Shown here: positions 1 to 58,112 of the stretch, piece after piece
Numbering within the stretch: the stretch's first letter is position 1
Layout: every line of letters begins with the position of its first letter
Assembly: GCA_002269645.1 (NCBI GenBank)
Contig: NIVC01003664.1
Location: 1 to 64,000 of the forward strand
Direction of reading: 5' to 3'
Length of the DNA: 64,000 nucleotides
Source: Macrostomum lignano
Lineage: Eukaryota
Program-made: the position numbers and the translations under genes
Notes under the pieces: model-generated
Databases searched by the model: none
The model's input: only the letters and a program-made list of their open reading frames with translations
Told to the model about the DNA's origin: nothing

Positions 1-275
1 TCCGGCCGCTCAAGGTTGATGTCTCTTCTCTTCTCTCCCTCTCTCTCTTTTCCCTCCTCTCTCACCTTCTCTCCCCCTCTCCTCTCTCCTCTCTCCTCTC
101 TCCTCTCTCTACTCTCTTCTCTCTAACCTCTCCCCTCCTCCCCTCCCCTCTCTCCACTCTCATGTCTCTACCCTCTCCTCTCTCCACTCTCCTCTTCTAT
201 TATCTTCTATCCTTTCTCTAATCTCTCTTCTCTCTTCTCTCATCTCTCATCTTCCATCCCATCTTCTTTCCACTC
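1..275. repeat. CT-rich low-complexity tract
   Basis: Almost pure C/T irregular repeat (ctctc/ctcct). Confidence 0.9.
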
Positions 276-421
276 TCATTGAGGCAAAACAGTTTGCTGA
301 CCCCTGGTGTAGTATTTCCAAATTTTGACTGAATTTACCTTTTGAACTAAAGTTGAACAAACATATTTGTTAGTGCAGATGTAATCAAAGTAAGGTTTTT
401 AGACACAGTTGGCGACCTCAC

Positions 422-3400
422 CGCAGGATTCGATAGCGCAAGTCTCAAAGTGAATTTCACTGTCTTCCTCGTTAACATAGAAACATCCGGGAACCAACGA
501 CGAGATTAGTGTGCTTCGCTGGGTTGATGGGGAGTTTTTGAATTTGTAGCTCGTACAGGAATCCAAGCTGGATAATAATTATCACAGGTATTTCATTGAA
601 AAAAATTAGCTGGGCAGCTTACCTGGAGCCAACCCGGTTCGTGCCAGTCTCATCGTAGTAAGTGGCATCGTACAGGACGTGGGCCGCTCTGCAGTAGTTC
701 GTGCGATTGCTTATCGCGTAGTCAGTCGTCAAGATGATCATCTGATCGATTGAGTAGTCTGGGCAAAATATGACAATTTTAGTTGTATTGATGATTGATA
801 AATTTTTATATTGGTTTTTTGACAACGGCACTGAAAAACTCACATCGGAATGGAAAATTCCAAGAAATCAAATCTGAGTTTGCCAGGCTAAGCGTCCGCT
901 TGGCTATGGCAGTCTTCACGTCGTCCCACACCATGCACTCCCGACCGGAGTTGGTATAATTCAGGTTGCCTGTGTACTTTGCTGACTGCTTCTCCGCGAC
1001 GTCGCCGGAGCTGCGCACCACGCAGTCGTAGGTTCCCGAGGCGGCTGCGGATGAAGCAATGAGAAAGTTAAATTTGCAGATAGGCGAAAGCATATGAGCG
1101 AAACTTGTTTTTAGTCTGAAGGACCTTAGCAACTGGGATGATTTTTTTTATTAGAGGCCGGGGGTTGTGTGCACCCTGGCGCACTTTAAGCGACATCAAC
1201 ACACAACCGGCGAGAGGCATTACTGCCCATTCCGCCGACTCCCCTGAGCAGGCACACAAGCGCGCGGATACGTACGCAGGCCCACACTCACACAGGAGTG
1301 TACAGCGGCCCTAACTTTATTTATCGTTAGGCATGTACACTTCACTGTGCCTTGGGGGGTTGGCCCTCGAGGCCGTTAATGCACGAGCAGAGCCAAGCTG
1401 AGATTCCAATTTAGTCCCAGATTATTGTGACTGCACTTGGAATCGAGCCTGGGCCGCTGGCACACGAGAGCAGCTGCGCCAGACCACTGGACTACGGCCC
1501 CTCATTAGAGCAAGCTCAGATAACGCAATGCCGCATACAGCAGAACGGGATGTTGCAGTAGGACAGCGCCAGTCCATTGTGCGTATCATTGTAGTAGAAA
1601 CAGTACGGCCCAATCAGATAGTCGGCCAGGAAGCCTCCGTAGGACGCGAATACAGGCAAGTCGGCTGAAAAAAGAAAGTCAATTATGATTAAAGTAGAGC
1701 AGGGCCAGGGAAACTTTGTTTCTTAGATAATATAAGCAAAAATTATACGACAGTAGTAGATACGTAATACAGCTTCATTGATTTGGGAACTTTATTTATG
1801 GAATAGAATTTAGGAAGAATGGAATTAGCAGGCACTGTAGAGTTGGTAGAGGTCCCTCCTGTGCCTTCCTTCCTGTGCCTTCCCTCCTGTGCCTTCCCTC
1901 CTGTGCCTTCCCTCCTGTGCCTTCCCTCCTGTGCCTTCCCTCCTGTGCCTTCCCTCCTGTGCCTTCCCTCCTGTGCCTTCCCTCCTGTGCCTTCCCTCCT
2001 GTGCCTTCCCTCCTGTGCCTTCCCTCCTGTGCCTTCTCTCATGTGCCTTACCTCCTGTGCCTTCCCTCCTGTGCCTTCCCTCATGTGCCTTCTCTCAGTG
2101 CCTTACCTCCTGTGCCTTCCCTCCTGTGCCTTCCGTTCTTGCCCTTAACTTAGGCACCGTGCCGAAATGAAGGGCTCGAGAAAGAGTCTACAGAGGCGAG
2201 AGATTATGCAACCGCGCCGCTTTTAATATGCAAGACAAGGCTCCCTCACCCGTGGGCCGGATCTGCTTCACGCTCATGTACAAGCCGTCTCCTCCGCAGG
2301 TTTCATCCGCATCCGCGGCCTGTCCGGGACACGAGTACTTGCAGTTACTCGAGTCTGCCGTGTTACCAGGCACAATTCTGTTACTGCAGAAGCAATCATA
2401 GTACTGCAACCCGTAGTACTTGAAGTTGTTTTTGAAGCAGCATTCGGTGCACTTTTCGACGTTCATAGTGGGAATCTGGCCGCCGAAGCAGCTCACAAAA
2501 AGTCTGTCCGATGCGCTGTCCTGATAGCAGATTGGATCCTTGTCTAGGTTGATCAGGTAGGCTGAAATTCATTCGATCAGATATAAGCGTGTTATAGCAG
2601 TGAATAGAAGTAAACCAACTCCAGTAAGAAACGCTATTATGGATACGAAACAAGCGCATTTCATTTTTGCGCTGGTCTTCAACAGTGTACGAAACACCGG
2701 ATGGCCAAGAGTTCACAACAACTGCATTGAAATGTAAACCTACGCCTTCGGCGACATCATCCCACAACCAGCACTTTGGCAGTCTCTCATACGAGCTACA
2801 CACGCTCACACAGGGTGTACAGCGGGCTTCTGACTTTTCAACCGTCAGGCAGGTACGCTCTCTGTGCCTTGGGGGTTGGCCCTGACGGCTGTGAATCGCA
2901 TGAAAACCCGCCGGCCAATTTTCGTGCACAAGTACCAAATAAATTTGTTTGCGCACGGGAATCGAACCAGGGGTCGTGGCGCGAGAGTTAGACACAATTT
3001 TCGCTGAGTAACTCCGCTCTATTGCGCTGCTTTTAATAGCATATTTTACCAATTCTGGCTCTGGTTAGTACAAGAAAATAACATTTCATAACCTGAAACT
3101 TTCGTATCTGGGAAATGAATTTCATAAAGAAAAAACCGTCAATACTTTGAGTGAGCGAGCGTTCCTGGCATGAGCAGACAGCCCCAGAAACTCACTGGTG
3201 AAATTGTCGAATTCCTCCAGCGGCAGGCCAGGTGGAGTCCGGCACCTGGCGTCATTATTTGAGAAATTATAGGACAGAATCTTGTCCGACATGTTCTTGA
3301 GGCCGGCCTCTGCAAGCAGACGGGCGGCCTCGTTCCATGGCATGCAGGGCAGCTCCGTGACGTAGTTCGGCTGCGTCAGATTGCTTGGTGGCAGTGTCAG

Positions 3401-5612
3401 CCTCAGGCTGTTGCCGAACACGGGCACCGAGCTCTTGTCTGTCGGTGTATTCGGTTCCGTCCAGGGTAAAGCGACACTCGCTGGTGTTTCCCGCTGAAAG
3501 AAAAACGTGGGAAATTATGGTGTAGTAGTAGCTTTTCTCCTGCACTTCTTTCCTTCTTTGTAGTGTACCGGCATTCTTGCATTGTAATGAATAGAATGAA
3601 GTGCATGGGATGATTCCTGAATTAATTAGGAGAAAGCACTTTTAAAATTCGAAGCATTCTAATTGCTTCAAATGAATGCACCGTCATGCATCTAGCTTAA
3701 ATATTGATTTTACAGCAACAGCAACAAGAGACGCAACCCAGAGAAGCAAAGTCAAGCGGCCAGGGTGCGTCAGACGGCGTCGCAAAGCAGGCAGTCTCCG
3801 CGTATCGACGGGTTCGGGCCTGGCCCCGCCTAAATGGGCCCTGGAAGGGGAGCAATAGAATGTAGAGGCTGGGGGCAGCAGCAGGATCACGTGACCCGCC
3901 AGTCATCGCCCGCGCAGGATGTTGGGACGGGCGTCGAGAAATACCTTGAGTTACGGCACTTACAGACCCATCCGCACCCTCTGCAAACTAAAGAACTCGT
4001 TTTCACTATCAAGATTCAACTAGTGCCTTGTTAGTTGGCTACGTATTTTGCTAGGAGGGCTTTGAACACTGCCTCCCATTCCACTGACCTAGAGCATGCC
4101 CACGCACACGGATACGTAAACGATTTTCACATCACCAGGCAATGAACAAAAAGTCGCAGGTCAAGACTCAATTTCTGTGCATTTTGTGTCTCAAATAATT
4201 GCGAACCCTTACTGAGTGTGCTACTGGTCTTAAACAATGCATCTTATTAACACTTTAGTCTTAACCAGGGGATTCGTTACCGGGGGGGGGGACATTACAA
4301 TATCTTGTCCCCCCGTCCCACCTTGTGAACCGTTATCTGAAATCAGTAAGTTTGCGTTCAAAGCGCCAAAATTAGTGCTAAAAACGCCATGTAATTCCCC
4401 CCACCTGTGCCTCGAGTATTTATAACTCAAACATTAACTTGTCCCTCAGAATGAGTTTCCTCACCGATGCCTTTGTTGTTGAGCTTGGGCATCAGAGCAG
4501 CTTCCACAGAATACACCATTCTAGCGAATGCGTACATTGGCGTGCTCAGGTAGACGTCGGATTCCTTGAAGTAGCTCAGCCTGGCCTGGCAGGTGGTGTT
4601 GCAGTCTTTCTTCAGTCCGCGCAACTTCGGCATGTCATCCTTGAGCTTGAATGGTTCGTAGGCCTTACTCATCGCGATCGGATTCTTCGGGCAGATGTAC
4701 ACATCCGGGAACTCGTACGGCAGCGAGGTGGCCAGGCTTGTGAGCAAACGGCGTGCTGGTGAATCTGTGAGTAGATTGGAATTCAGCCGAATGAAATCGG
4801 ACGCACGGGCTACTTGATATTTGTTTAACTGAACAAACGGTTAAAGCAATCTTGATATTATCTACATCGTCAACGGATTTGTTTAACTGATCAAACGGAT
4901 AAGTGGATGACTCATCGTCAATGCTTCTTAGTTGATATTTGTTTAATGAAGTTGTTTATGTTGAATAATGTACTAATGACGTTTGTATATCGTATAAATT
5001 TCTTTCAATCCAAAGCTAAAACTGAGGGCTATGGGCACCCTGACGCATCGCTCTCAGCGAAATTGTCCCACAGCCAGCGGCAATTCTGCCTTTTCTGCTG
5101 ACTCCTGAGCACATGCAAGCCCGCCAATACTGTACGTAGGAATGAACTCATACACGATCTCTTCAGGGTGTACAGCAGCCTTAATCTTCTAATCGTCAGG
5201 CATTAGAAGATTATCTGTACACTCTCTGTGCCTTGGGGGAATTGCACGACAACCCGCTCGCCTCCCCGCTGAGTCTTCAGACCGCCCTGCAGCTATATAA
5301 GTCAGGTAAGACAAGTCAACTCTGGGCTGGCCCTCAAGGCTGTGAACCCTTCGGCCAATTTTCATTGCCCCAAATGAATTCACCTGTCAATCAAGGTGAA
5401 CAGGTGGTAAGCGAAGCCGCCATAAGTGCCGAGCAGAAAGGCGATCCAGATTGTGCGGCCAAAGGCCGTCGACTGGGCGGCGAAGCGTCCCAGGCCGTGG
5501 CGGTGGTGTACTGGGCGAATTCGCGGAACGAATTGGCGATGCCGAAGCCGCCAGCCTCTGCTTCTGCTGTACCGCTTGCGTCTGCGGCGCTCTGCTTCTC
5601 AGTGTCTGCCAT
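422..5612 (-). CDS. DEG/ENaC (amiloride-sensitive sodium channel family) protein with kringle-like(WSC-inserted) + kringle-like ectodomain modules; 3' end off-window; 3 frameshifts (pseudogene or assembly error)
   Basis: Hand-spliced exons with GT-AG ends and consistent phases: 5612-5384, 4764-4465, 3493-3196, 2561-2250, 1664-1539, 1044-844, 758-623, 567-422 (possible mini-exon 328-302). Restoring one G at 5499-5500 gives FREFAQYTTAHGLGRF..RTIWIAFLLGTYGGFAYHLF (the ENaC pre-TM1 HG motif + TM1). Exon 2 gives FTSTP..LPYEFPDVYICPKNP (the FPxVTxCxxNP motif). Kringle motifs: YTGNLNYTNSGRECMVW, NYCR, PGCFY..ETCAIESC and GPYCFY..SYCNIPFC. WSC: CYQD..TMNVEKCTECC..YYGLQYYDCFCSN..CKYSCPG..CGG. Confidence 0.85.
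1160..1418. mobile_element. MITE/foldback family copy (intronic)
   Basis: Its end (ccgttaatgcacgagcagagccaagctgagattccaatttagtccc) is the reverse complement of 36518-36570. It shares the gtgtacagc..tgtacac..ctgtgccttggggggttggccct core. Confidence 0.75.
1850..2135. repeat. 14-bp minisatellite (CCTGTGCCTTCCCT)n, ~20 copies
   Basis: Directly visible tandem unit in an intron of the channel gene. Confidence 0.95.
2250..2561 (-). CDS. WSC-domain exon (symmetric phase 1-1) of the DEG/ENaC-like gene
   Basis: 312 nt, acceptor tttcag, donor GTGAGG; WSC cysteine pattern C..C..CC..YYGLQ..C.C..C...C.G....CGG. Confidence 0.85.
2745..2935. mobile_element. partial MITE/foldback family copy
   Basis: ccttcggcgacatc..cacaaccagc and cagggtgtacagc..ctctctgtgccttgggggttggccct match 36660-36840. 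Confidence 0.65.
5025..5370. mobile_element. diverged MITE/foldback family copy
   Basis: cgccaatactg..ctcatacacgatc..cagggtgtaca..gtacactctctgtgccttggggg..aattgcacgacaaccc match the 36.7-36.8 kb copy. Confidence 0.65.
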
Positions 5613-5635
5613 GCCTGCTGATTGAGGGGAAATGC

Positions 5636-6686
<1,051 letters not shown>

Positions 6687-11875: not shown

Positions 11876-12166
<291 letters not shown>

Positions 12167-14149: not shown

Positions 14150-14150
14150 C

Positions 14151-14182
<32 letters not shown>

Positions 14183-14254
14183 AGAGTGTCTGGCTGTCTG
14201 TCTGTCTGCCTGCCTGCCTGTCTGTCTGTCTGTCTGTCTGCCTGTCTGTCTGCC

Positions 14255-14335
<81 letters not shown>
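14150..14335. repeat. (TCTG)n/(CCTG) microsatellite
   Basis: Direct. Confidence 0.95.
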
Positions 14336-16776: not shown

Positions 16777-17399
16777 CTGAAAATGCAGATTGAATGCACT
16801 ACACGGATGCTGTCTTCGCCTAACAAGGATGCCGATGTCCCCCTCCCCTCTTAATGCAATTTATTGTTGCACGGCGATAAGTTGAGCAACAGTGCCTTCC
16901 GCTTCACCTCGCAAATGAAGGATTTGGGTGGCAACAGCGAAATGCAATCACACGGCCCATCTCAGCTGCCTTGTGTTCTAGCCTGAGCATGCAGTAAATT
17001 GAGCCCACTTCCCCCTGCATCAGCCTGGGCAGCAGCAATCGAGTTATCCCCTGGCGCCCCGGGGGCTCCCACCATCTCCAAGCATGGCTGATTTTCCTGG
17101 CTAACATAGCACTGCTGCTGCTGCTGCTGGAAGCGAGCAGTCATTCAGGTCAGCCTGAAGACATGATCGAGAGCAAATCAAGGCTAATAAGGGTTATTAC
17201 AGAGGGGGGGGGTAGCAGTTGCAGTAGCGAATGCTCCTGGTTTAAAGAGCTATTCAATGTTGCTGTCTTCAGCAATTTCTGGATGCAAATGCTCACTAAT
17301 TCATGTGTTAGTTTCTGAAGTAACTCTGGCTCACCTCACTCCCTGCAGACCTCACCTGTCTCTGGAATCTCTTTCTATGGGTCCTTTCTGCTCTCTGAA

Positions 17400-17660
17400 C
17401 TTTCCTCTTCTCTCTTCTCTCCTCTCTCCTCCTCTCCTCTCTCTACTCTCTCTCATCTCTCATCTCTCCTCTCTCTCCTCTCTTCTCTCTTCTTTCCTAT
17501 CTCTTCTCTCTTCTCTCTTCTCTTCTCTCCTCTCCTCCCTCTTCTCTCTTCTCTCCTCTATATTCTCCTTTCTCCTCTCACCTCTCTTCTCTCACTTCTC
17601 ACCTGTCTCCTCTCCCCGCTTTCTTATCCATTCTCTTTTCTCCCCTCTTCTCTCTTCTCC
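17400..17660. repeat. CT-rich low-complexity tract
   Basis: Direct. Confidence 0.9.
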
Positions 17661-20600
17661 GCCATTCAAGCCAAGCACAAACTTCCAGGAATTTCTAGTT
17701 CAAAATACACTCACAGATTTGTTCGAAAGCACTTGCGTCCAAAGCTTCATCAAGCCTAGCCATCTTCATCACTATGGAACTCTGTCCTCTGCGAGGCATT
17801 ATAGAATGAATAGGAACTAAGCAGAGAAGCCTGATGAAGCTTAAATTCTCATCCAGCCTCGCAGGAAGTTCAGCGGCACCAAAATCGCTAATCTGTCCGG
17901 CCCTCATGGGAGGACGGATGGAAAGTTTTAATCGGGAGATAATTGAAGCCTCGCTTAAGCGCTGCACAACGAAAAGGCGCTCGCAGACTTTCTCCAGACA
18001 GGCCTCGGACATCGCGTTCCGCCCTCTGGGGAAATTCTGTCCGCGGATCAGGGGCACAGGATTAGGGCGGCGGCTTTGGCTCCGGCCGAAATCTTGCTAG
18101 GTTACCCCCAGCTAACTTTCACTCCAGCAACGGATGGGGCATAGAGGCTGGGACAGAGTGGAGAAAAGGGTCTCACAAAAGAAGACAATCCCGAGAACGC
18201 ATCCAGCAAGATAAAGAAGCCAGATAAGATAGGGACAAAGTTTCGTTTGGCGTGGGTCAAAAAAACTTTTCTTTCTTATTAAAGAAGAAGAGCAAAAGAA
18301 GAAGATGGAGAAAGGCAAAAGCCGATCTGCGCAGTGCCAGGGACTGGGAGAGCCACAAAGAGACGTCGGAGGTGGGGGCATCGGGCCCCGGGGTCCCTCT
18401 GCCCCCTTCCTGTGCTCGCTCTGCTAATAATTGGAAAGCCTCATTACTTGCTAATTCCCGGGTCGCAACTCCGTTTTGGGATTCTTCTGCCGACCTGAAA
18501 ATCTCTCCCCTGCTCAGTGTGCCGTGAATTCGCTCCCTCCCATGTATTTTCATGTCCCATTGAGACCATTTGTATTGGGCTCTGGGCTTGCGTGTACTTT
18601 CTCTTCGCCCCCCGGCTTCAGATCCGATGCCTGAAATGAATTAACAATCAAAAGGGTATTTCGTTACGCTTCTCAGGGCCAGCTCAATGCATGTCGGTCA
18701 GAGGTCACAGGTCGGGGAGAATGGTGAGCAGACTTTCTGTGAGCTAACCAGTCGCCAGGTGCAGGGAAGCGGCACCTAAACAGCAGGATGCATCATCGCG
18801 CCTCCGTCATCTTCTAGCCTGAGCGGCTTCCGGACGGAACCCGTCAGAATCAAGAGGCTCAGTTTGGCAGGGCCTTCCGGGTCTGAGTTACAGACCGTAC
18901 CGCACAGTCTGTTGGCATGGCAGCTGCCGCAGTGTTGGCGGTGGAGAGCAACAATGGCTGATCATTCTTTGTGTGCGGCAGCTTGGCAGGGCAGGGGAGG
19001 ATTTCATTATAAAGGAGAACTGGATGAGAAGCATCAATCATTATTCTGTTGGCCGTCTGGACAGTTGAAGACTGCTATGAGAAGTGAAGCGAATTTACAC
19101 CCACACACGCACAGAGCAGAAGAGAGCGCTATAGCAAGGTTCCGAGGCAAAGAGACCAGCCAGCCCTCACAATGCGGGACACCCTTTGCTGCCTCTGACA
19201 CCTTCACGCTCCGCCAGTCAGCCCCGCCCGTCCAGAGAAGCGATAGAGTCTTTGGGAAGCATTCACCTTTGGCTCGGCCAGGTCCGTATACTAGCGAGGG
19301 AGATTGATCGATCGATAGCTTTTTACATCAAAGTTGGAACCTCTGCGTTCTGTGTTGGACGCCTGTCCTGCTTGCTGCTACTTGTTACATTGTTTTTCAT
19401 AGTCATATATAGTTTTAATTAAGGGTAGCACGTGTTTGCTGAAACTAGCTTTGCTTGTTGATGAGACACAAAGAGCCTCACTTTGATGTGTCCAGTGTGC
19501 GCAACAAGCGGCTGTTATGCAACAATATAGCTAGGAACAGAGGTGTCCTCGTTGCAGATAAATAAATTTTTAAACCAACTCAAGAAGACGAAGAAATGCA
19601 AAAGCAAGAGCAGAAGCAGACCATTGCCAATAGGATTTGCGAATCGATCTGACTTGAAGCGGAACGGAAGGCAAGCGATGACGAAGCTGCGCTAGGTAGA
19701 AAAATCAATTAATTCACTCTCTGGTCCAGCCAGCTTCCCCAAACTGCACAGCTTCATCGGGCAGCTTGTCACGAGCTCAATATACTCGTCTACATTTTAG
19801 CTATATTGTGGGATGGATCGGCTCAAATCCACTGCTTTAGCGTGTTGTTCCGAGGAAATATGTCAGGAAAAAAGTATTGAACCACGCCATGACAGCTCCG
19901 ACCAACTGTTACATTGTTCCCATTTTTGCAAGATTTGGATACGGGCACAAGGGAAAGGAAAGTATAAAACAGAAGACAATGGGATGAGGGATTACAGGCA
20001 AGGCACGGGGGTGGGAGATGAGATGGAACCAGCCATTGCTAATGGCCTGCCATCCCAGCCCCCCTCACCCCTTGCAAGGCGGAGGTGCTTAGCCGCCGCC
20101 AGCCCCGTCGCATATTGTTATCTCTAATCGGAGCACTGGATGTGGCTACTGGGCTGCTGGGGAGGGATAAGGCCCGTCCCTACCGCACTCACCGCCCTGT
20201 ATCGGATTTCAAAATCTCTTCTTCCCCATCTCACTTTTCCCGTCCACTCGGTTCCCCCCTCGTTTTTTTCTTGTCCCACTCCCTCGCGAGAGTCTCTACA
20301 AGCTAAAGCAAAGACAGGCTTTAGGCACCGGATTTTGAAGAATCACCGGAGACTCTTTGAAATCCTCTCAGCCGATCTTAGGTTTACCTACTTCCAGCAA
20401 CAGTTAGAAACAACCGCCAGTTGAAATCAAAGCACTAGCTAGGTAAACAGCGCACAGGTGCATTTGGTACCCAAGCATCGGTGCACTGTATGAAAGTCTG
20501 GGCTGTGTGACGATGCCCTCACATCCAACGACCCCGAGTCATAGCCGAACATAGTACCGATTAGTGACACCCGAAACTGATGGAGCCGGGCATTTGGCTT

Positions 20601-20706
20601 CATTGCGAGGGAGGCGCCCGCAATTCGGTATATTGTCGAAATAAGACCTGACCGCTCCTAGTAAAACAAAATCTTGCTCAATTTTTCATGCTAAAAATCC
20701 GCTCAC

Positions 20707-22359
20707 CGCAGCTGGCGACCCGGATGGCCGGCCGAGCGACCAGCCGGCCACGGAGAAGTCGCCCGCCACGCCGACGGTGTCAGCGTCCGCGTCAGCGCCG
20801 CAGTCGTCTCCGTTGCCGTCTCCGCCGTCCACAACGCCGCCGCCGCCGCCGCCGCTGCCGTGTGTCTTGGACCTCGCCAGCCTGTCGCCGGTTGCTAAGC
20901 GTGCGTCGCTAACGACGCCGCCAGTCGAGGCGACATCGGCAGACTTAGCCCGCACGTAGAAGATGGCCGCCACCAGGCCAGCCGCGATCAGCACGGTGGC
21001 CGCGATGATGACGATCAGGATGGCGACGCCGCCAGCGCCAGCAGCGCCGAACCGGTGCATCGACCCGGGCGGCGCGGTCAGCCGGACGTAGAAGGTGACG
21101 CTGCCGGAGAGGCGCCGGGGCAGGCCGCCATCGGTGGCCACCAGGGTCAGAGCGTAGACGCCAGGTTGCGGCGGTCCTAACGGGTCGTCCGGCTTCCAGA
21201 GAGTGTGCAGCTCGCCTTTGACAGGATCCACGCCGAACAGCCGGCTGCCGTTGGTTCCCGGACGCAGGCCGAAGCTCACCGTGCCGTTGTCGCCAGCGTC
21301 AAGGTCGGCGGCCACCGCCTCAATCACCAGGGACCGTTCGGGCAGGTTCGTGTAGAGCAGCCGAGTGGCGACAGCAGACTGCGCCTCGCTGCCAGTTGCT
21401 CCGTCGCGGACACCGCTTCCAATGATCTGGCCGGGCAGCGGCGCGGTGAACACGGGGGCATTGTCGTTTACGTCCAGCACCTCGATCTGCAAGCTGGCGG
21501 TGGCCGAGCGAGGCGGCTTGCCGAGATCCGAGGCCCCCAGCAGCACCAGCAACCGCGGCTGCTGCTCCCGGTCCAGTTTAGCTTTCAGCAGCAGAGCTCC
21601 AGTTGAAGCGTTCAGGCGCAGGTACTCATTGTGCACGTACCGGCCTGGCAACAGGTTGAATCGAACTGTGCCGTTCTCGTCCTTGTCCGGGTCTTGAAAC
21701 GCAACGCGGCCGATCTGGGCACCCACCGAGCTGTCCTCGGACACGCTCATGACCGGCGGGCCCACGTAGGCCGGCGCGTTGTCGTTTTCGTCCAACAAGA
21801 TGACAATGACGGAGGCGGAGGCGCTTTGCGACGGATGTCCGGAGTCCTCAGCGATCACTTGGAACGTCAGGCTTGGCTGGAGCTCGCGATCGAGTCTGGC
21901 GCCGGGAAGCAGCTCGATATTGCCTGAGCGCTGACCGATGCGGAAAAATTGCTTCCCAGCCGCGTCCAGGCGGTAGGACAGCAGGCCGCTCTCGCCCTTG
22001 TCCTTGTCAACCGCCTGCACGGTCAGCACGGAGAGGCCAGAGGCCAGGCCCTCGGACACCTGGGCAAAGTAGCTTCTCTGGGGGAAGGCCGGCGCGAAGT
22101 CGTTGGTCTCCCGGATCGGAATTACAAACCGCCGGATGGCCGGCTGCACTGGCTGGGCCGAGTCCATGCAGCTGATCTCGACGGAGACGTTCTGCAACAC
22201 TTCGAAGTCGAATCGAGTAGCGCTGTATAAGTTGTAGGTGGTCGCCTCTGACGACTGTCGCTCGGCGTTGTTGTTGTCAGATATTTTCAGACTGAACATT
22301 GGGTTAGACTGTAGCTTGCAGGTCACCTTGCCACGGGACACCGAGTCCACGTCAGTCAC
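20707..22359 (-). CDS. protocadherin exon 2: rest of EC4, EC5-EC7, TM and start of cytoplasmic tail
   Basis: Cadherin motifs (ETNDFAPAF, LDRE, DENDNAP, DVNDNAP, DxDxGxNG), TM GVAILIVIIAATVLIAAGLVAAIFYV; acceptor ctcgtag, donor GTGAGC. Confidence 0.93.
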
Positions 22360-22823
22360 CTACGAGTTGGATGGAGAGTTCGAAAATTTTAGTGAGCAAC
22401 ATTTTTTATTAAGACTTGGCAAAGCCGCTACGGCCTACCCGTGTCTTGGCCTTGCCCGAGGACTATCGGGGCCCCCCTCGAAGTGTACAATATGTTCTAC
22501 ATAGACTGTCCAGACCTCTCAAAGGGTACAATATGTTCTACATAGACTGTCCGGACCTCTCAAAGGGTACAAGATATCTTACAAAGACTGTCAGGGTCTC
22601 TCGAAGGGTACAGGAGGGTTACAGTCTTACAAAGACTTCATGACCTCTCTAAGAATACAGGATGTCTTACAAAGACTCAGAACCTCTCGAAGCGTACAGG
22701 ATGTCTTACAAAAACTGTCAGGGTCTCTCGAAGGGTACAGAAAGTAGCAGGACTGAGCTCTATCTGCTATGTCTCGCCCCCCCCCCATACTCATGTCGAC
22801 CCATGTCAAAGTTGAGCAACCAC
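22360..22823 (-). other. 464-bp phase-0 intron splitting EC4, filled with degenerate tandem repeats
   Basis: AAG|GTGGTT ... CTCGTAG|GTG joins ..ELIMTLK|VTDVDSVSRG.. in frame. Confidence 0.85.
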
Positions 22824-23960
22824 CTTCAGCGTCATGATGAGCTCGCCTTCGCTCCTGTGCTCGTACAGGTCGTACACAGCCAACTGCTCGATTATCGGCG
22901 GATTGTCGTTGACGTCTTTGACGTTGACGGTGACGGTGGCGCTGGCCGAACGTACCGGGGTACCGGAGTCCCGAGCCTCGATCAGCACCACGGCGCTGCG
23001 CTGCTCCGGCCGCTCAAAGTCCAGCTGGCGGCGCAGGTGGAGGTCCCAGGTGGAGGCCCCTTTTTTTAGCACCTCGAAATGGCCAGCGAGTTCCGACGGT
23101 GTTACGGCGACAATCTTCAGGTGGAGCTCGGCGTTGGCGCCGTCGTCCTGATCGTCTACCGAGAGCGTCGTGAGCCTATCGCCGACTGGCCAGTTTTCCG
23201 GGATCTCCAGCGTCTGCGTCGGCGTATTGAAGACTGGTGCGTTGTCGTTGACGTCGCCGACTCGGACGGTGATGACCACGGCGCCAGTTCGGAGGCCGTC
23301 GGTGGCGCGCAGGGTGATCTGGTACTGCGGCTGCCGCTCGCGGTCCAGCGGTTTCGTCAGGCGCAGACGCGGCTGCCCGGCCCCGGACGTGTCCACCAGC
23401 GCGAAGGTGCCGCTGGGGTCCTCCAGGCTGTAGTTGGCCACGCCGAACGCGGGCGAGTCGCGGTCCTCCGCCGCGGGCAGGTCGATCACCGTCCCGTTGG
23501 CGTCCTCGGGCACGTCGATTGGCTGCATGCTGCGGAACGCAGGCGGCTGGTCGTTCTCGTCGTTCAGGACAATGCGCAGCAGGCGAAGGATCGGCCGGGA
23601 GCCCGGCGCCGCCCGCAGCTCGAGTTGATAGTCCAGGACGCAGTCGGACTTCTCGCAGCAGTCCAGGAGGCCGCAGAGCTCGTCTCGGTCCACGTCGCGG
23701 TTGGCGGAGATGGCGCCCTGCCGGTCCACGGTGAATAGGTTGTCCGGGCTCTTTGATTGCGGCTCCAGGCGGGCGGACTGGTAGGGCGGCGGCGGCAGGC
23801 GGCTGTCGAGGGTGTACAGCTGGCCGACCAGCGTTTTGAAGTTCACGTTGTCACCCAGGCTGATGCTGATGCCGACGTCCGCCTGAGCGGAGGCCGGCGT
23901 GGCTAGCAGCACCAGGAGCAGGTGGACGCTGGCGAGGCGGCTCTGCTGCTTGGCGGCCAT
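22824..23960 (-). CDS. protocadherin exon 1: signal peptide, EC1-EC3, start of EC4 (7-EC, delta-1-like architecture)
   Basis: MAAKQQSRLASVHLLLVLLATPASA signal; EC1 DVDRDELC..C motif typical of protocadherins; PED/PEN, LDRE, DxNDN motifs. Confidence 0.93.
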
Positions 23961-28864: not shown

Positions 28865-31578
28865 TTGGCTGAGGGAGTGACATTGAGGATCTGGGTGAGG
28901 GAGTGGCATTGAGGATCTGGGTGAGGGAGTGACATTGAGGATCTGGGTGAGGGAGTGACATTGAGGATCTGGGCGAGGGAGTGAAATTGAGTGAGGGAGT
29001 GACATTGAGGATCTGGGTGAGGGAGTGGCATTGAGGATCTGGGTGAGGGAGTGGCATTGAGGATCTGGGTGAGGGAGTGACATTGAGGATCTGGGTGAGG
29101 GAGTGACATTGAGGATCTGGGCGAGGGAGTGAAATTGAGTGAGGGAGTGACATTGAGGATCTGGGTGAGGGAGTGGCATTGAGGATCTGGGTGAGGGAGT
29201 GGCATTGAGGATCTGGGTGAGGGAGTGACATTGAGGATCTGGGTGAGGGAGTGACATTGAGGATCTGGGCGAGGGAGTGAAATTGAGTGAGGGAGTGACA
29301 TTGAGGATCTGGGTGAGGGAGTGGCATTGAGGATCTGGGTGAGGGAGTGGCATTGAGGATCTGGGTGAGGGAGTGACATTGAGGATCTGGGTGAGGGAGT
29401 GGCATTGAGGATCTGAGTGAGGGAGTGACATTGATGATCTGGGTGAGGGAGTGACATTGAGGATCTGGGTGAGGGAGTGGCATTGAGGATCTGGGTGAGG
29501 GAGTGGCATTGAGGATCTGGGTGAGGGAGTGACATTGAGGATCTGGGTGAGGGAGTGACATTGAGGATCTGGGCGAGGGAGTGAAATTGAGTGAGGGAGT
29601 GACATTGAGGATCTGGGTGAGGGAGTGGCATTGAGGATCTGGGTGAGGGAGTGGCATTGAGGATCTGGGTGAGGGAGTGACATTGAGGATCTGGGTGAGG
29701 GAGTGACATTGAGGATCTGGGCGAGGGAGTGAAATTGAGTGAGGGAGTGACATTGAGGATCTGGGTGAGGGAGTGGCATTGAGGATCTGGGTGAGGGAGT
29801 GGCATTGAGGATCTGGGTGAGGGAGTGACATTGAGGATCTGGGTGAGGGAGTGACATTGAGGATCTGGGCGAGGGAGTGAAATTGAGTGAGGGAGTGACA
29901 TTGAGGATCTGGGTGAGGGAGTGGCATTGAGGATCTGGGTGAGGGAGTGGCATTGAGGATCTGGGTGAGGGAGTGACATTGAGGATCTGGGTGAGGGAGT
30001 GGCATTGAGGATCTGAGTGAGGGAGTGACATTGATGATCTGGGTGAGGGAGTGACATTGAGGATCTGGGTGAGGGAGTGGCATTGAGGATCTGGGTGAGG
30101 GAGTGGCATTGAGGATCTGGGTGAGGGAGTGACATTGAGGATCTGGGTGAGGGAGTGACATTGAGGATCTGGGCGAGGGAGTGAAATTGAGTGAGGGAGT
30201 GACATTGAGGATCTGGGTGAGGGAGTGGCATTGAGGATCTGGGTGAGGGAGTGGCATTGAGGATCTGGGTGAGGGAGTGACATTGAGGATCTGGGTGAGG
30301 GAGTGACATTGAGGATCTGGGCGAGGGAGTGAAATTGAGTGAGGGAGTGACATTGAGGATCTGGGTGAGGGAGTGGCATTGAGGATCTGGGTGAGGGAGT
30401 GGCATTGAGGATCTGGGTGAGGGAGTGACATTGAGGATCTGGGTGAGGGAGTGGCATTGAGGATCTGAGTGAGGGAGTGACATTGATGATCTGGGTGAGG
30501 GAGTGACATTGAGAATCTGGGTGAGGGAGTGACATTGATGATCTGGGTGAGGGAGTGGCATTGATGATCTGGCTGAGGGAGTGACATTGAGGATCTGAGT
30601 GAGGGAGTGGCATTGAGGATCTGAGTGAGGGAGTGACATTGATGATCTGGGTGAGGGAGTGGCATTGAGGATCTGGGTGAGGGAGTGACATTGAGGATCT
30701 GGGTGAGGGAGTGGCATTGAGGATCTGAGTGAGGGAGTGACATTGATGATCTGGGTGAGGGAGTGACATTGAGAATCTGGGTGAGGGAGTGACATTGAGG
30801 ATCTGGGTGAGGGAGTGGCATTGATGATCTGGGTGAGGGAGTGACATTGAGGATCTGAGTGAGGGAGTGGCATTGAGGATCTGAGTGAGGGAGTGACATT
30901 GATGATCTGGGTGAGGGAGTGACATTGAGAATCTGGGTGAGGGAGTGACATTGAGGATCTGGGTGTGGGAGTGACATTGAGGATCTGGGTGAGGGAGTGG
31001 CATTGAGGATCTGGGTGAGGGAGTGACATTGAGAATCTGGGTGAGGGAGTGGCATTGAGGATCTGGGTGAGGGAGTGACATTGAGGATCTGGGTGAGGGA
31101 GTGACATTAAGGATCTGGGTGAGGGAGTGACATTGAGGATCTGGGTGAGGGAGTGACATTGAGGATCTGGGTGAGGGAGTGACATTGAGGATCTGGGTGA
31201 GGGAGTGACATTGAGAATCTGGGTGAGGGAGTGACATTGAGAATCTGGGTGAGGGAGTGACATTGAGGATCTGGGTGAGGGAGTGACATTAAGGATCTGG
31301 GTGAGGGAGTGACATTGAGAATCTGGGTGAGGGAGTGACATTGAGGATCTGGGTGAGGGAGTGACATTGAGGATCTGGGTGAGGGAGTGACATTGAGAAT
31401 CTGGGTGAGGGAGTGACATTGAGAATCTGGGTGAGGGAGTGACATTGAGGATCCGAGTGAGGGAGTGAAATTGAGGATCCGAGTGAGGGAGTGACATTGA
31501 GGATCCGAGTGAGGGAGTGAAATTGAGGATCCGAGTGAGGGAGTGACATTGGTGATTTTGGTGAAGGAGTGACATTGA
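28865..31578. repeat. 26-bp minisatellite (GAGGGAGTGACATTGAGGATCTGGGT)n with higher-order structure, ~2.7 kb
   Basis: Direct; an 18-bp truncated variant recurs at 148/148/304-bp spacing (600-bp period). Confidence 0.97.
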
Positions 31579-32077
31579 GAAAACGTTTATACCTTTAAGT
31601 CTAGGCGAGCACCTTTATTTTGCAAGCAAGCAAGATGCACAAGTAATGTCCGAGAGGGCATAAACAGGGTCAACAAACCGGCCATGATCATCAGCAGAGT
31701 TGGGGAATGTATTGCCTGTGTGAGTCGAATTGAATTGAGGAGGTTGTGTCACATCAGAGAGCATTTGACAACAATTGAGTCTCTGATTGCCTCCGCGGCT
31801 CGCAGCTCCTAAGACCCAATTGGGCAAGAAATCCCAGACAGTAAATTAATTTGCATCGATTCGACATGGCCATTTATCCAAGAGCATCCAATGCATTCTG
31901 TTCACTTGTATACCAGTTCCAAGTATGAAGTGGGCTACCGGTCATGCAGTTTACCTAATCGGAATAACAAGTATGCACTGAGACCTGCTCAAGGAAGTGA
32001 CGATACCGAGAAAAATGGACAAATAGGCTTTGTAATAGTTGCCCTACTCTTCAATAAACAGGAGTCTTCACTTAACA

Positions 32078-32815
32078 GCCACCTCACTCCACAGCCACCT
32101 CACTTCACATCCACCTCACTCCACAGCCACCTCGCTCCATATCCACATCATTCCATATCTACCTCACTCCACAGCCACCTCACTCCACAGCCACCTCACT
32201 CCACAGCCACCTCGCTCCACAGCCACCTCACTCCACAGCCACCTCACTCCACAGCCACCTCGCTCCATATCCACATCATTCCATATCTACCTCACTCCAC
32301 AGCCACCTCACTCCACAGCCACCTCGCTCCACAGCCACCTCACTCCACAGCCACCTCACTCCACAGCCACCTCGCTCCACAGCCACCTCACTCCACAGCC
32401 ACCTCACTCCACAGCCACCTCGCTCCACAGCCACCTCACTCCACAGCCACCTCACTCCACAGCCACCTCACTCCACAGCCACCTCACTCCACAGCCACCT
32501 TGCTCCACAGCCACCTCACTCCACAGCCACCTCGCTCCACAGCCACCTCACTCTACAGCCACCTCATTTCCACACCCACCTCACTTTACAGCCACCTCAC
32601 TCCACAGCCACCTCACTCCACAGCCACCTTACACCACAGCCACCTCACTCCACAGCCACCTCACTCTACAGCCACCTCATTTCCACACCACATCACTACA
32701 CAGCCACCTCACTCTACAGCCACCTCATTTCCACACCACATCACTACACAGCCACCTCACTCTACAGCCACCTCATTTCCACACCACATCACTCCACAGC
32801 CACCTCACTCACCAC
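32078..32815. repeat. 16-bp minisatellite (CACCTCACTCCACAGC)n
   Basis: Direct, degenerate at the ends. Confidence 0.93.
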
Positions 32816-33735
32816 ACCGGGAGCAGTCGTCACAACTTTGTCATCTTTGTCATCATAGCTACTAGAAATAAAATATAAAACAGAATCAGTCATCGCGCCG
32901 ATATTGCTAAAAGCCAGACTGCCAGTTGCAATCAGAGCTACAGCTCATTCAGACGCTGCCCACTCGATGGCCGGTCAAGTTCAGGTCAGAATTAGCAGCG
33001 CCTTCGCTGCAGTTTGTTGCTGACTAAGGCTGCAGCTGCCGCTGCTTCTGCTTGAGCTGTCTCGAAGGAACGAGCAGAGATCTCTAGAGAAAGAGACGAT
33101 TCGGGCACTAATGGCGGCTAGAAGATGGGGGAGAAGAGAGAGAGCGAGGCTGCGCAGCAACGCCCCAAATTGAGCCACTCGAGTTTGCGGCGGCCCATAC
33201 CCCGGGCCTCGATCCCCTTCCTCACAAATACTTCCCCCCCCCCCAGAGGATCGCGAGCTCTCGAGTGTCGGGTAGCCGGGAGCCGGAGCCGCCGCGCTCT
33301 CTGGTTAAAGGATCCGAGAGAAGGCTTCACCAAGGTTGGCCAATTGCTCCCAGCGGGTGCTGTGCGCGCGAGTGCTTGAAGAAGCAAAGTCGGTGGACTG
33401 TCTAGCCAGCTAGTATGGTCGAGATTTTTTGAGCTGGCAAAAATAAAAGCGATCATTGTGCCGACTTGTTTTGACTGCCAGCTTGGCTCCACAGGGCAGA
33501 CTTGTGTACGAGCACAGTTCCTATGTACACTTGAGACCTTCAAGACTTTCAACAATTCATCTAAACATTTTGGATTCCTCTGGAAAAGCAATAGCCTAAC
33601 TTGATATTTCAACGTACTTTAATGTACACTAAAAGTGTTTATTCAATAGAACCGGTGAAAAAGAAGCTGGTTGAAATGCTTGATTGATGAATGTGCTTCG
33701 AGAGTGAGTAAGAGTGCAGTAAAGAGGAGGCTGCA

Positions 33736-34650
33736 GAGTGAGGTGGGTGCAGGAGTGAGGTGGGTGCAGGAATGAGGTGGGTGCAGGAGTGAGGTGGGTG
33801 CAGGAGTGAGGTGGGTGCAGGAATGAGGTGGGTGCAGGAATGAGGTGGGTGCAGGAATGAGGTGGGTGCAGGAGTGAGGTGGGTGCAGGAGTGAGGTGGG
33901 TGCAGGAGTGAGGTGGGTGCAGGAGTGAGGTGGGTGCAGGAGTGAGGTGGGTGCAGGAATGAGGTGGGTGCAGGAATGAGGTGGGTGCAGGAGTGAGGTG
34001 GGTGCAGGAGTGAGGTGGGTGCAGGAGTGAGGTGGGTGCAGGAGTGAGGTGGGTGCAGGAGTGAGATGGGTGCAGGAGTGAGATGGGTGCAGGAGTGAGA
34101 TGGGTGCAGGAGTGAGGTGGGTGCAGGAGTGAGGTGGGTGCAGGAGTGAGATGGGTGCAGGAGTGAGGTGGGTGCAGGAGTGAGGTGGGTGCAGGAGTGA
34201 GGTGGGTGCAGGAGTGAGATGGGTGCAGGAGTGAGGTGGGTGCAGGAGTGAGGTGGGTGCAGGAGTGAGGTGGGTGCAGGAGTGAGGTGGGTGCAGGAGT
34301 GAGGTGGGTGCAGGAGTGAGGTGGGTGCAGGAGTGAGATGGGTGCAGGAGTGAGGTGGGTGCAGGAGTGAGGTGGGTGCAGGAGTGAGGTGGGTGCAGGA
34401 GTGAGATGGGTGCAGGAGTGAGGTGGGTGCAGGAGTGAGGTGGGTGCAGGAGTGAGATGGGTGCAGGAGTGAGATGGGTGCAGGAGTGAGGTGGGTGCAG
34501 GAGTGAGGTGGGTACAGGAGTGAGGTGGGTGCAGGAGTGAGGTGGGTGCAGGAATGAGGTGGGTGCAGGAGTGATATGGGTGCAGGAGTGAGGTGGGTGC
34601 AGGAGTGAGGTGGGTGCAGGAGTGAGGTGGGTGCAGGAGTGAGATGGGTA
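33736..34650. repeat. 17-bp minisatellite (GAGGTGGGTGCAGGAGT)n, ~53 copies
   Basis: Direct. Confidence 0.97.
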
Positions 34651-34949
34651 TTGCAGTGAGGTGGAAGTGAGAATGGTTTTAGTTCGACACAAAAATTTCT
34701 GTCAAATTTCTGCCAAAATTTGGCAAAAGAAGAATTGAATTTGCACTTTAAAGTCAAATTTTAATCAGCAAAAGCTCGCAGAGCATTGAGAAAAAAAGCA
34801 AAAAAAAACTTGGACCATGAACAGTCCACTTCCCGTAGTCGTGTATTTGCGGTTGCAAAATTACCAGTGAAAAAAATTTGTTCAAACCCAACTGATCAAA
34901 AAACGCATTTTTATACGAGATGTAAAAAACGGACGGACGCCTGCGCGGG

Positions 34950-35955: not shown

Positions 35956-36513
35956 TAGAACCGTAGGTTAGTGTTTTTGATTTAAACATATTGTTCGCAT
36001 TTCACAGCATTTGGGATGCACGAAAAACCATTGAGATAAAATCAAAGCCATTATTTAATGTGATTCAAATTGATTAAGGAAAAGCATAATCTTAAAATAA
36101 TATTATTATTTTATTTAAATATAATTTCGAACTTTGAAAATGATTCAAAATATAAATAAATGGATTAAGAAGGGCGCTTTATTGCGAATGGTGGCTGTCT
36201 GGGGAATCAACAAAAGGCGGAACACGACAGAATCAAACTTATTACGTAATAAAGAAAATTCAACGATTCAACTAAGTAAGGAGCGGTGAAAATGAAGTTG
36301 TCCGCAACAAAACAACCAAGTACTACAGTTGGACAGAAATATTACATAAAAAGCTAATATGTCTACTAACAGCAGTCTGTAGCGATTTTTTATCAACAAA
36401 GTGCAATAACAGTTGAAATCAACCCGCTGCATCCATTGCCAGCCAATAGGAAATTAAAATGCGCGAAAGTTTGCTAAAGTTCGAAAGTTCGATTCCTAGT
36501 GCAGTCACATTAA

Positions 36514-36860
36514 TTTTGGGGCTAAATTGGAATCTCGGCTTGGCTCTGCTCGTGCAATTAACGGTCTTGAGGGTCAACTCCCAAGGCACAGTGAAGTGTA
36601 CATGCTTAGCCGATGTACACCCTGAGTGAGCGTGTGTACAAGTGCGTGCCTGCGAACAGTCCTTCGGCGACATCGTCACACAACCAGCGCTGTAGACAAG
36701 CGCGCCAATACTGAACGCAGGCGCGCACTCATACACACGATCACTCAGGGTGTACATCGGCCAAGCATGTACACTCTCTGTGCCCTGGGGGGGGGGGTTG
36801 ACCCTCATGACCGTGAATTGCACGACAACCCAACAGCCAATTTGCACACAAGCCCCAAAA
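36514..36860. mobile_element. palindromic MITE/foldback element, ~340 bp, just 3' of the SSADH stop
   Basis: Left arm gtgcaattaacggtcttgagggtcaac..aaggcacag..gtgtacatgcttagccgatgtacaccctgagtga is the inverse of the right arm; ends TTTTGGGGCT / AGCCCCAAAA; possible TAA TSD. Related copies at ~1.2, 2.8 and 5.1 kb. Confidence 0.8.
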
Positions 36861-43567: not shown

Positions 43568-43826
<259 letters not shown>

Positions 43827-45944: not shown

Positions 45945-47703
45945 ATGAAGTCAGTTAAAAGTACAATAAAGAGCACATGGACTCCGCTTTCAAAGGACGA
46001 GACAAATGCGGCTGTATGTTATACAGAATTATCTGTGAAATTTTTTACAGATTGGTGGATTTAGTCAATAATAATTAAACTTAATACAGCTTTCTCGTAT
46101 ATTAGGATCCATTGGTTTCGCGCAAAATGGCGTCGTATTTTTTTCATTTTTAAAAATTTCATAGCACAAAATTATTATGCAGGCTTGAAAATACAATGAC
46201 TTTTACTGCAACATGTACGAGCATTGTCTATACTTTAAACTGCTCTAAATGTAATCTATCATATGTTAATTTCATAATTTTGTTTGAAGTACCTAAAAAA
46301 CACAAAAATAAACAATTAATAATTAAATAAATGAATGTTTAAAACTTTTCATAAATTATAACTAACAGTTTGTTTTGAAAAGCAAATTGTAAAATTGTAC
46401 TCTAAAAGTTTGGGCTACTATTTTGTTCTTTACCTCAAGATTATTTTCTTGGCCAAAAGTTATACAGTACTCCAGTATGTACTTTGTTAATCATTTTAAA
46501 GCTTAGCTGAACCTTGATGAAAGACAACTCTTAAATTAAATATTTGACATAATATAAATGTTTAAAGCATCACTTTAATTAAATATAACTGGCTAGATTT
46601 GTAAAGATTTTTTCGTTTCATTAAATTTATGAAAAGCAAACCACCTCGTATTTATTTTATGCCTTTAGTTTTTACAGTAATGTCAATACTTGATGTAATT
46701 AAGCTAATTTCCTCTCCTGACTCATTTTAGATTTTTGAGGAACGACGTAACCTTTTAAACAAATGGGTAAGCTCATTGGAGAAACATTCGTTATTGTTTA
46801 TCATATAAAAAATCAGGAATTTTGAATTATGACTTGGTTTCAGTTCGCGAAATGGACCGACGAGCAGCGAAAGACGGCACTGAACGACCTGGTGCGAGCG
46901 TGCAACCAGTCCCAGATCGAACATCTGCACGAAGTCACGAAGCCCAGAGTGGTTCTGCACAAGGTGGACTTCACCCGCCAGCTGCCAAGGAGCCTCAGCT
47001 TGCTGCTGCTGTCCTACTTGGATCCGCGCAGCCTCTGTCGGGCGGCTCAGGTGACTCAAACTGCCGCCATGACTGGCCCCACCCACTTGCCACGCGACAA
47101 CCTAGCGCACCTATACAGAACACCACACCCGATTACCACAACAAAGCTCACACTGGATTCCCTATCCCATCCGCTGACAGGTAAGCTGGTACTGGAACTG
47201 GCTGTGCGACTCTGACGAAGTCTGGCTGCCCAAGTGCGCCCGCCTTGGCTGGTTCCTGCCCGCCCAGGCGCATCGGGACGTTGAAAGCTTCACCTTCTGG
47301 ACTGGCAAAGCCGTCACGCCCGGAGTCTACAAGCGGCTGTACTTGGAGAACCTCACCAGCCTGCAGGTATGAGAGGGAGAGTACGGAGGGAGAAGGAGAG
47401 AGGGTCCAGGTTCGACCCTGGGCTGTGGCACTCCGTCGACCTCAAGGAATAGTACAACAAAGCGTGCCTGGGGGGCATCGAATTCACTGCATTATTTAGT
47501 TAGTTAGTTGGTTAGTTAGCTCAGTTAGTTAGTAGTGAGTTAGTTAGTTTGTTTGTTTGTTTGTGAGTTAGTTAGTTAGTTATTTAGTTTGTTTGTTTGT
47601 TTGTTTGTTTGTTTGTTAGTTAGTTAGTGAGTTAGTTAGTTAGCTCAGTTAGTTAGTAGTGAGTTAGTTAGTTTGTTTGCTTGTGAGTTAGTTAGTTAGT
47701 TAT

Positions 47704-47772
<69 letters not shown>

Positions 47773-47821
47773 CAGTTAGTTAGTTCGTTAGTTAGTTAGT
47801 TAGTTAGTTACTTAGTCAGTG

Positions 47822-47887
<66 letters not shown>

Positions 47888-47978
47888 CTCAGTTAGTTAG
47901 TAGTGAGTTAGTTAGTTTGTTAGTTTGTTTGTTAGTTAGTTAGTTAGTTATTTAGTTTGTTAGTTTGTTTGTTAGTTT

Positions 47979-48034
<56 letters not shown>

Positions 48035-48069
48035 GTTAGTTAGTTAGTTAGTTAGTTAGTTTGTTAGTG

Positions 48070-48100
<31 letters not shown>

Positions 48101-48153
48101 GAGTTAGTTAGTTAGTTAGTCAGTGAGTTAGTTAGTTAGTTAGTTAGTTAGTC

Positions 48154-48216
<63 letters not shown>

Positions 48217-48217
48217 C

Positions 48218-48298
<81 letters not shown>

Positions 48299-52184: not shown

Positions 52185-53220
<1,036 letters not shown>

Positions 53221-57207: not shown

Positions 57208-58112
<905 letters not shown>

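Follow-up and report, generated by a model that had tools for sequence, protein, structure and literature searches.

Can recognisable receptor modules be built into the extracellular domain of a pore-forming DEG/ENaC subunit? The question is raised by a locus of the flatworm Macrostomum lignano, for which an earlier note, made from the sequence letters, had proposed a DEG/ENaC-family channel carrying two kringle-like modules and a WSC domain. The stretch analysed (the window) consists of 64,000 nt, forward-strand positions 1-64,000 of contig NIVC01003664.1, and the proposed gene lies at 422-5612. Our overall reading, to which we assign a probability of about 85%, is that this is a channel gene whose finger holds a nested kringle-WSC-kringle array, that it belongs to a restricted and expanded subfamily, that the array would serve as a binding antenna, and that the frame breaks of the window copy are probably consensus errors.

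The channel gene and its sister copy

Three-frame translation combined with splice-site mapping delineated eight exons of a DEG/ENaC gene on the minus strand, running from 5612 to 422 (Table 1). All introns are of the GT-AG type, and the phases agree at each junction once single-base indels are allowed for; E3, E4, E5 and E6 are phase 1-1 exons. The splicing and frameshifts by which the earlier note had explained why the open-reading-frame list misses the gene were found, the latter as single-base breaks relative to a sister copy in E1, E2, E3 and possibly E8.

The Pfam ASC profile (PF00858) scored 32.4 bits on exons 1-2, compared with a gathering cut-off of 23.6. The translated sequence contains the N-terminal motif FREFAQYTTA(H)GLGRF, the first transmembrane segment (TM1) and the strand YEFPDVYICP. 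The HG motif is in frame only if one C is restored at 5499-5500, and it is unbroken in the sister protein. Translation and the ASC score therefore bear out the ENaC N-terminal motif, TM1 and FPDVYICPKNP at the positions given in the earlier note, on the minus strand.

The nearest database protein was the M. lignano product BOX15_Mlig034226g1 (P0001; 802 aa, partial), 95% identical to the first-draft product of the window gene. Its locus, NIVC01000342.1 (L001), is colinear with the window over 17 kb at 94-99% DNA identity, with position 1 of the window matching L001 position 17105. In this sister locus the second kringle module is followed by core exons at 17230-17847 and 18136-18732, encoding SPSVPGIVRNNIG..CDFYGWQCTANHF..GVCYKF and then ..DCLNEYV..CRCLPTFLPIP..FPWP, and by the second transmembrane segment (TM2), GILGLWCGVSILTVCELIEL, at 19514-19624. 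The downstream ASC and TM2 exons on which the earlier note had made its claim depend were located in this way. The G-x-S motif of TM2 and the extracellular core were found in the sister locus and in the paralogous proteins P0006 and P0161, not inside the window, whose left end falls about 120 bp short of the next exon. The donor of E8 (TGCG/GTGAGG, the slash marking the splice site) is a good one and is directed off that end. The window thus contains, at 422-5612, the first eight exons (the front two-thirds) of a genuine channel gene, the rest of which lies just past the left end. No second DEG/ENaC gene was found in the window.

The exons of the channel and those of the kringle/WSC part contribute to a single annotated NCBI protein, P0001. 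P0006 (1052 aa; WSC, and ASC at 131 bits) and P0161 (1049 aa) are independent full-length models with the same order from the HG motif to TM2, and ASC scores across the paralogues ranged from 41 to 131 bits. When ASIC5 was aligned to P0001, ASIC5 residues 4-80 matched P0001 residues 45-119 and residues 126-175 matched 592-641, indicating that the extra material sits in the finger. As the earlier note had it, the insert maps to the position of the ASIC5 finger, which is about 45 residues long; the corresponding region here has about 470 residues, of which about 390 make up a disulfide-rich array. Channel sequence flanks the insert on both sides; two adjacent genes fused into one are thereby excluded, and as judged by these alignments the insert lies in the extracellular finger of one DEG/ENaC channel subunit.

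Some exon boundaries required a choice. An alternative acceptor of exon 2 that avoids the frameshift (CACAAG/CC at 4736) was ruled out since the sister protein reads RFTSTPLLTSL, and an alternative acceptor of exon 3 (CCAG/CG), also free of a frameshift, was ruled out by ECRFTLDGTEYTG in the sister protein. E8 has an open frame with an acceptor at 568/567; the gene model of the sister copy uses an acceptor at about 519/518, which in the window is out of frame by one missing C. Since the paralogues do not have the extra 16 residues of E8, the 518 acceptor is favoured.

Table 1. Exons of the channel gene and frame breaks relative to the sister copy (a slash marks a splice site)
Feature	Position in window	Strand	Content	Boundaries, basis and remarks
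E1	5384..5612	-	ATG at 5612; cytoplasmic N-terminus FREF..YTTAHG (HG gating motif); TM1 TIWIAFLLGTYGGFAYHLFTLI	donor GACAG/GTGAAT; Pfam ASC profile positions 1-86 cover exons 1-2; matches P0001 residues 13-91
E2	4465..4764	-	post-TM1 strand LPYEFPDVYICPKNP (FPDVYICPKNP), then ~70 residues of proximal finger	acceptor cacAG/ATTCACC; donor ATCG/GTGAGG (phase 1); aligns to ASIC5 (9mkz) residues up to 80
E3	3196..3493	-	N-terminal half of kringle-like module 1: Cys1 ECRF..GTEY, Cys2 PCMPW, Cys3 ARCRTPPG	298 nt long, with one surplus base; phase 1-1; hhalign to kringle profile positions 1-60
E4	2250..2561	-	WSC domain, 10 Cys	symmetric exon (phase 1-1), separating Cys3 from Cys4 of module 1
E5	1539..1664	-	C-terminal half of module 1: Cys4-6 GPYCFY..LSYCNIPFC
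E6	844..1044	-	kringle module 2, Cys1-Cys2: DCVVRSS..KYTGNLNYTNSGRECMVWD (DCVV..KYTGNLNYTNSGRECMVW)	Pfam Kringle positions 4-32, 21-22 bits; phmmer matches to true kringle proteins, query residues 221-285; hhalign
E7	623..758	-	module 2 long loop and Cys3 (NRTNYCRAA)	donor TCCAG/GTAAGC (phase 2)
E8	422..567	-	module 2 Cys4-6: PGCFYV..ETCAIESC	donor TGCG/GTGAGG at 421
Frame break 1 (E1)	5499..5500	-	CC vs CCC in sister copy	one base missing inside the TTAHG codons; adding C restores YTTAHGLGRF
Frame break 2 (E2)	4746..4748	-	CCGTTTGCTC vs CCGCTGCTC in sister copy	extra base and substitution; removing one T restores RFTSTPLLTSLATSL of P0001
Frame break 3 (E3)	3441..3442	-	ACCGACAGAC vs ACCGGAGAC in sister copy	extra base and substitution
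Possible frame break 4 (E8)	~518	-	one C fewer than sister copy

Kringle and WSC modules in the finger

The Pfam WSC profile (PF01822) matched E4 over profile positions 4-82 of 82 with 48.1 bits (cut-off 27.8), and five Cys residues of this segment are invariant in 8/8 aligned sequences, two of which are truncated. The segment PICYQ..FVSC was considered as the end of kringle 1 and rejected, because the Pfam WSC match begins there and the paralogues have the 'GC' start of a WSC domain at this point.

The kringle is a compact triple-loop fold of about 80 residues with disulfides 1-6, 2-4 and 3-5. For profile comparison by hhalign, an alignment of 24 canonical kringles built from search matches served as reference. 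Module 1, with the WSC excised, aligned to kringle positions 1-83 of 88 with a probability of 97.0% (E=1e-10), its C-terminal half alone to positions 58-83 with 94% (E=1e-7), and module 2 to positions 6-83 with 96.8% (E=3e-10). The WSC segment, used as negative control, gave 0.1% (E=0.41). In both modules six of six Cys aligned to those of the kringle. The scores were 59.7 and 57.8, compared with 11±2 (maximum 16.7) for 100 column shuffles of each query. The kringle motifs G-x-x-Y-x-G, C-x-x-W, (N)xCRxP and GP(Y/W)C(F/Y) were present in kringle order. These results confirmed the six-Cys kringle-like module containing a WSC (Cys split 3+3) and the second six-Cys module, encoded by exons 6-8, that had been proposed in the earlier note.

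The paralogues have the pattern C-R-x-T-L-x-G-E-E-Y-x-G...C-M-x-W...S-R-C-R-x-P-P-G-L-P—[WSC]—G-P-Y-C-F-F...Y-C-N-V-P-x-C, with kringle Cys1-3 ahead of the WSC and Cys4-6 behind it, followed by a second module with all six Cys. Because each half of module 1 contains an odd number (three) of Cys residues, the halves would pair across the WSC. The WSC has a phase 1-1 exon to itself, flanked by the exons of the two half-kringles, which fits the insertion of an exon into a kringle intron. It is well supported that module 1 represents a divergent kringle split between Cys3 and Cys4 by a complete WSC domain, and module 2 a second divergent kringle, as predicted from profiles and motifs.

E3 contains a loop insertion of about 25 residues, and its Cys2-Cys3 segment is helical only in low-confidence AlphaFold models. 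E5 carries an in-frame 3-bp insertion at about 1597 relative to the sister copy.

A HMMER (phmmer) search with the 389-residue insert against 1.84 billion representative proteins returned three kinds of matches: single-stretch full-length matches, all from M. lignano; WSC-repeat proteins, at insert residues 111-192; and genuine kringle proteins, including a hedgehog apolipoprotein(a)-like protein, at residues 221-285. The layout was found in at least six clusters at <50% identity, all of M. lignano (P0001; P0002/P0003; P0006 and the related fragment P0010; P0007/P0161; P0008; P0050), and two of these paralogues, P0006 and P0161, are full-length. A tandem paralogue downstream of the sister gene (L001 25038-27559) repeats the exons for the N-terminus, the finger and the first half-kringle at 50-60% identity. 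Between the tandem genes (L001 23344-23565) there is a short ASC-core-like fragment with a stop codon, probably a decayed exon. No whole-insert match from outside M. lignano was present among the 1.84 billion proteins; transcriptome-only flatworms are probably absent from such libraries, and the restriction to Macrostomum is a lower bound on the spread of the layout. As far as sequence comparison can tell, the proteins with this layout constitute a subfamily that has expanded and is confined to the species or its lineage.

Full-text literature searches for DEG/ENaC proteins with kringle or WSC domains, or for these gene identifiers, found no description, which agrees with the earlier note's impression that the architecture was undescribed. 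The proteins are already public under automatic names ("hypothetical protein", "WSC domain-containing protein"), with the kringle parts unannotated. M. lignano DEG/ENaCs have been used in phylogenies, and three of them were expressed and gave no neuropeptide response (Dandamudi et al. 2022, PMC9234716); those tested were genes other than the window gene.

Alternative explanations and the frame breaks

Several observations weigh against the reading given above, and they are best considered together with the explanations that compete with it. The Pfam Kringle profile (PF00051) never reached its gathering score in any paralogue (12-22 bits vs 34.3). In the window product the 21-22 bits obtained were confined to the first 29 residues of module 2; the best scores in five paralogues were 22.2 bits for module 2 (positions 4-32) and 14.2 for the second half of module 1 (58-79), and the score stayed below threshold with the WSC excised. 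Thus, of the three domains for which the earlier note had recommended a Pfam scan, ASC and WSC passed and Kringle did not. The modules comprise about 140-150 residues, almost double the length of a normal kringle. As judged by inspection of the hhalign alignment, the NPDGD lysine-pocket loop is not conserved: CRNPDG corresponds to CRTPPG in module 1, where the WSC is inserted in the same loop, and module 2 has NYCRAAHVLYD. AlphaFold2, run with a four-sequence alignment, yielded no confident kringle fold, the mean predicted local distance difference test score (pLDDT) being 48.9 for the whole insert and 47.8 for a crop from the first half-kringle through the WSC to the second half (K1N-WSC-K1C). 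A direct PDB sequence search gave weak kringle and Kremen matches (E 0.02-0.6), and a homologue search with the insert alignment gave one match, which was irrelevant. Low Pfam scores, excess length and the absence of a confident fold would suit modules that are lineage-specific cysteine-rich elaborations of the finger, of the kind known from nematode degenerins, with short kringle-like motifs and with the WSC as the only imported domain. We consider this improbable, because the hhalign alignments cover the full profile with six Cys and ordered motifs at 97% probability, far above the shuffled controls, and because the whole-library phmmer search independently recovered genuine kringle proteins for module 2. 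Still less credit can be given to the possibility that the architecture is an artefact, in which adjacent genes for a DEG/ENaC and a Kremen-like kringle/WSC receptor were merged by eye and by gene predictors. It is true that the ASC core and TM2 are known from the sister locus and paralogues and not from the window, that the single-transcript status is drawn from database gene models and splice-phase logic, that P0001 is flagged partial, and that exons mostly of phase 1-1 can be joined in many ways. Against such a merger, TM1 and the first palm strand precede the insert, and CDFYGWQC..GVCYKF, palm/thumb and TM2 follow it in the same orientation; at least six paralogues at 30-35% identity, including two complete models of about 1050 residues, retain the exact order; and no signal peptide, separate transmembrane segment or CUB domain is located between the channel halves.

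The frame breaks, which were called by exon-by-exon alignment to the sister locus, raise the question whether the window copy is a recently inactivated pseudogene, the breaks being real mutations and the sister copy alone being functional. The 1.7 kb of coding sequence contains three definite single-base indels that disrupt the frame, and possibly a fourth, which would fit this explanation, as would the finding that two of the lesions are complex (an extra base plus an adjacent substitution) and not plain homopolymer slips, a further point that tells against consensus errors. Moreover, 6/11 exon substitutions alter the amino acid, and the protein database returned no protein encoded by the window copy itself. 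However, substitutions relative to the sister locus amounted to 6.3/kb in exons and 32.7/kb in introns, a five-fold difference, whereas short indels occurred at about equal density (2.3/kb in exons, 3.5/kb in introns). Constrained substitutions accompanied by unconstrained 1-bp indels are the pattern expected of technical indel noise on a constrained gene, and for this reason consensus errors are preferred over an old pseudogene. Every splice site is intact, and the product obtained after four single-base corrections has no stops and is 98.9% identical to P0001. At the E8 site (about 518) it is the sister copy that breaks the open frame of the window. Recent inactivation is accordingly the less likely explanation, though one that deserves to be kept in mind; that the three or four frame breaks are consensus errors of a long-read assembly, rather than marks of a dead gene, is more likely.

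Surroundings, related systems and possible role

A 1-kb (TGTC)n microsatellite of 262 copies (5645-6686) begins about 30 bp upstream of the channel ATG, and similar four-base arrays are found at 11923-12165, 14150-14335, 43569-43824, 47492-48298, 52184-53219 and 57207-58126. A 14-bp tandem array of 20 copies (TCCCTCCTGTGCCT, 1853-2134) is located in the intron that separates exon 5 from the WSC exon; its copy number differs in the sister locus as judged by overlapping BLAST segments. An interspersed repeat with 79-89% identity between copies occupies two introns of the channel gene (1141-1520 and 2801-2896) and recurs at 36489-36608, in the region of an aldehyde dehydrogenase gene, and at L001 19109-19348. 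By eye it resembles a short interspersed element; ARAGORN detected no tRNA in window positions 1-6000, the intronic copies of this repeat included. Farther away, two long open reading frames on the minus strand (557 and 384 aa, 20686-23960) encode a protocadherin-like sequence with multiple cadherin repeats and a transmembrane segment (Pfam Cadherin 145 and 98 bits). Aldehyde dehydrogenase exons lie at 36898-39023, also on the minus strand (Pfam Aldedh 161 and 174 bits, profile positions 130-255 and 303-461). Minisatellites with 26-, 16- and 17-bp units and up to 107 copies (28866-31579, 32075-32810 and 33724-34664) give rise to spurious open reading frames that reach 918 aa. A nested higher-order tandem repeat (59921-62975), with periods of 68/71, 139, 238 and 376 bp and 97-98% identity, is found toward the right end of the window.

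The window gene shares with ASIC1/ASIC5, FaNaC and ENaC the HG motif, TM1, the FPxVxxC strand, the CxFxGxxC..GxCYxF core and, in the sister copy, the G-x-S of TM2. It also shares with the solved DEG/ENaC structures a variable finger between the first palm strand and the beta-ball. Unlike in those structures, its finger holds recognisable imported domains, a WSC and two kringle-type modules. The ENaC finger has a protease-cleaved inhibitory GRIP insert, which does not belong to an autonomous family of binding domains. The C. elegans degenerins MEC-4 and MEC-10 possess extra cysteine-rich extracellular segments and have matrix partners in touch sensing, and thus provide a precedent for an extracellular tether on a DEG/ENaC subunit. 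Neither kringle nor WSC domains make up these extra segments, and the matrix-binding Kunitz and EGF modules reside on the separate proteins MEC-1 and MEC-9; in the window gene, by contrast, the channel subunit itself carries the binding-type domains.

Polycystin-1 is a WSC-bearing membrane protein implicated in the sensing of mechanical or surface stress. Another WSC-bearing surface sensor is yeast Wsc1 (PMC9024836). In both, as in the window gene, the WSC is exposed on a membrane protein, in their case one implicated in stress sensing; unlike these single-pass or 11-TM receptors, the window gene has its WSC inside a pore-forming DEG/ENaC subunit. The best-known pairing of kringle and WSC is that of Kremen1/2, whose ectodomain consists of Kringle-WSC-CUB in sequence, anchored by a single transmembrane segment (PDB 5FWS, PMC5014086), and the weak direct matches mentioned above included the WSC and the kringle of Kremen. 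The kringle-WSC pairing of Kremen, to which the earlier note had pointed, is present in a different order: here the WSC is nested in a kringle and the next module is another kringle, no CUB match was obtained, and the array is embedded in a channel. The window gene is no Kremen homologue; the link is the shared domain pair only. In flatworms, the membrane-bound six-kringle protein Tmed-krg1 of anchor cells was proposed to tether a lysine-rich cohesive protein, and homologues were reported in M. lignano (PMC9229212). Unlike the window gene, Tmed-krg1 has a tandem array of canonical kringles and lacks both a channel and a WSC. It provides a flatworm precedent for surface tethering by kringles, and no evidence on the window gene.

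In ASIC, FaNaC and ENaC the finger transduces protons, peptides and protease cleavage. Because the WSC and the kringle are both binding modules (Kremen1, PMC5014086; Wsc1, PMC9024836), and are here attached to such a transducing element, the array, in which the earlier note saw a built-in receptor-like sensor, would most likely act as a binding antenna or tether that modulates gating, to argue by analogy. Exon shuffling may have brought the WSC, with the phase 1-1 exon that encodes it, into a kringle intron. If the channel is a trimer, as is presumed, it would carry three kringle-WSC-kringle arrays on its top, which could serve as protein-, glycan- or matrix-binding antennae or tethers; occupancy of an array, or tension on it, might be passed via the finger to the pore gate. 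The canonical lysine pocket is not conserved, and the ligand is therefore not predictable from the sequence.

For annotation, the consequence is that these genes carry automatic names only and that standard domain scans overlook their kringle parts. With respect to protein evolution, they present a rare three-level nesting, a WSC in a kringle in a channel ectodomain, together with an exon structure that shows its possible origin. The stimuli of DEG/ENaC channels are diverse (protons, peptides, proteases, force), and it is the finger that encodes this diversity. We know of no earlier case of recognisable receptor modules built into a DEG/ENaC subunit, and for channel biology the subfamily represents a natural experiment on the coupling of finger movement to the gate. 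A bolder proposal, which we regard as rather doubtful, is that the protein is a receptor-channel chimera, which arose by exon shuffling and expanded in Macrostomum, and in which tension at the array, or the binding of a macromolecule (a glycan, matrix or a lysine-rich secreted protein), would directly gate the DEG/ENaC pore. If true, this would be a mode of gating, or an integral mechanical tether, for which the DEG/ENaC superfamily offers no known example.

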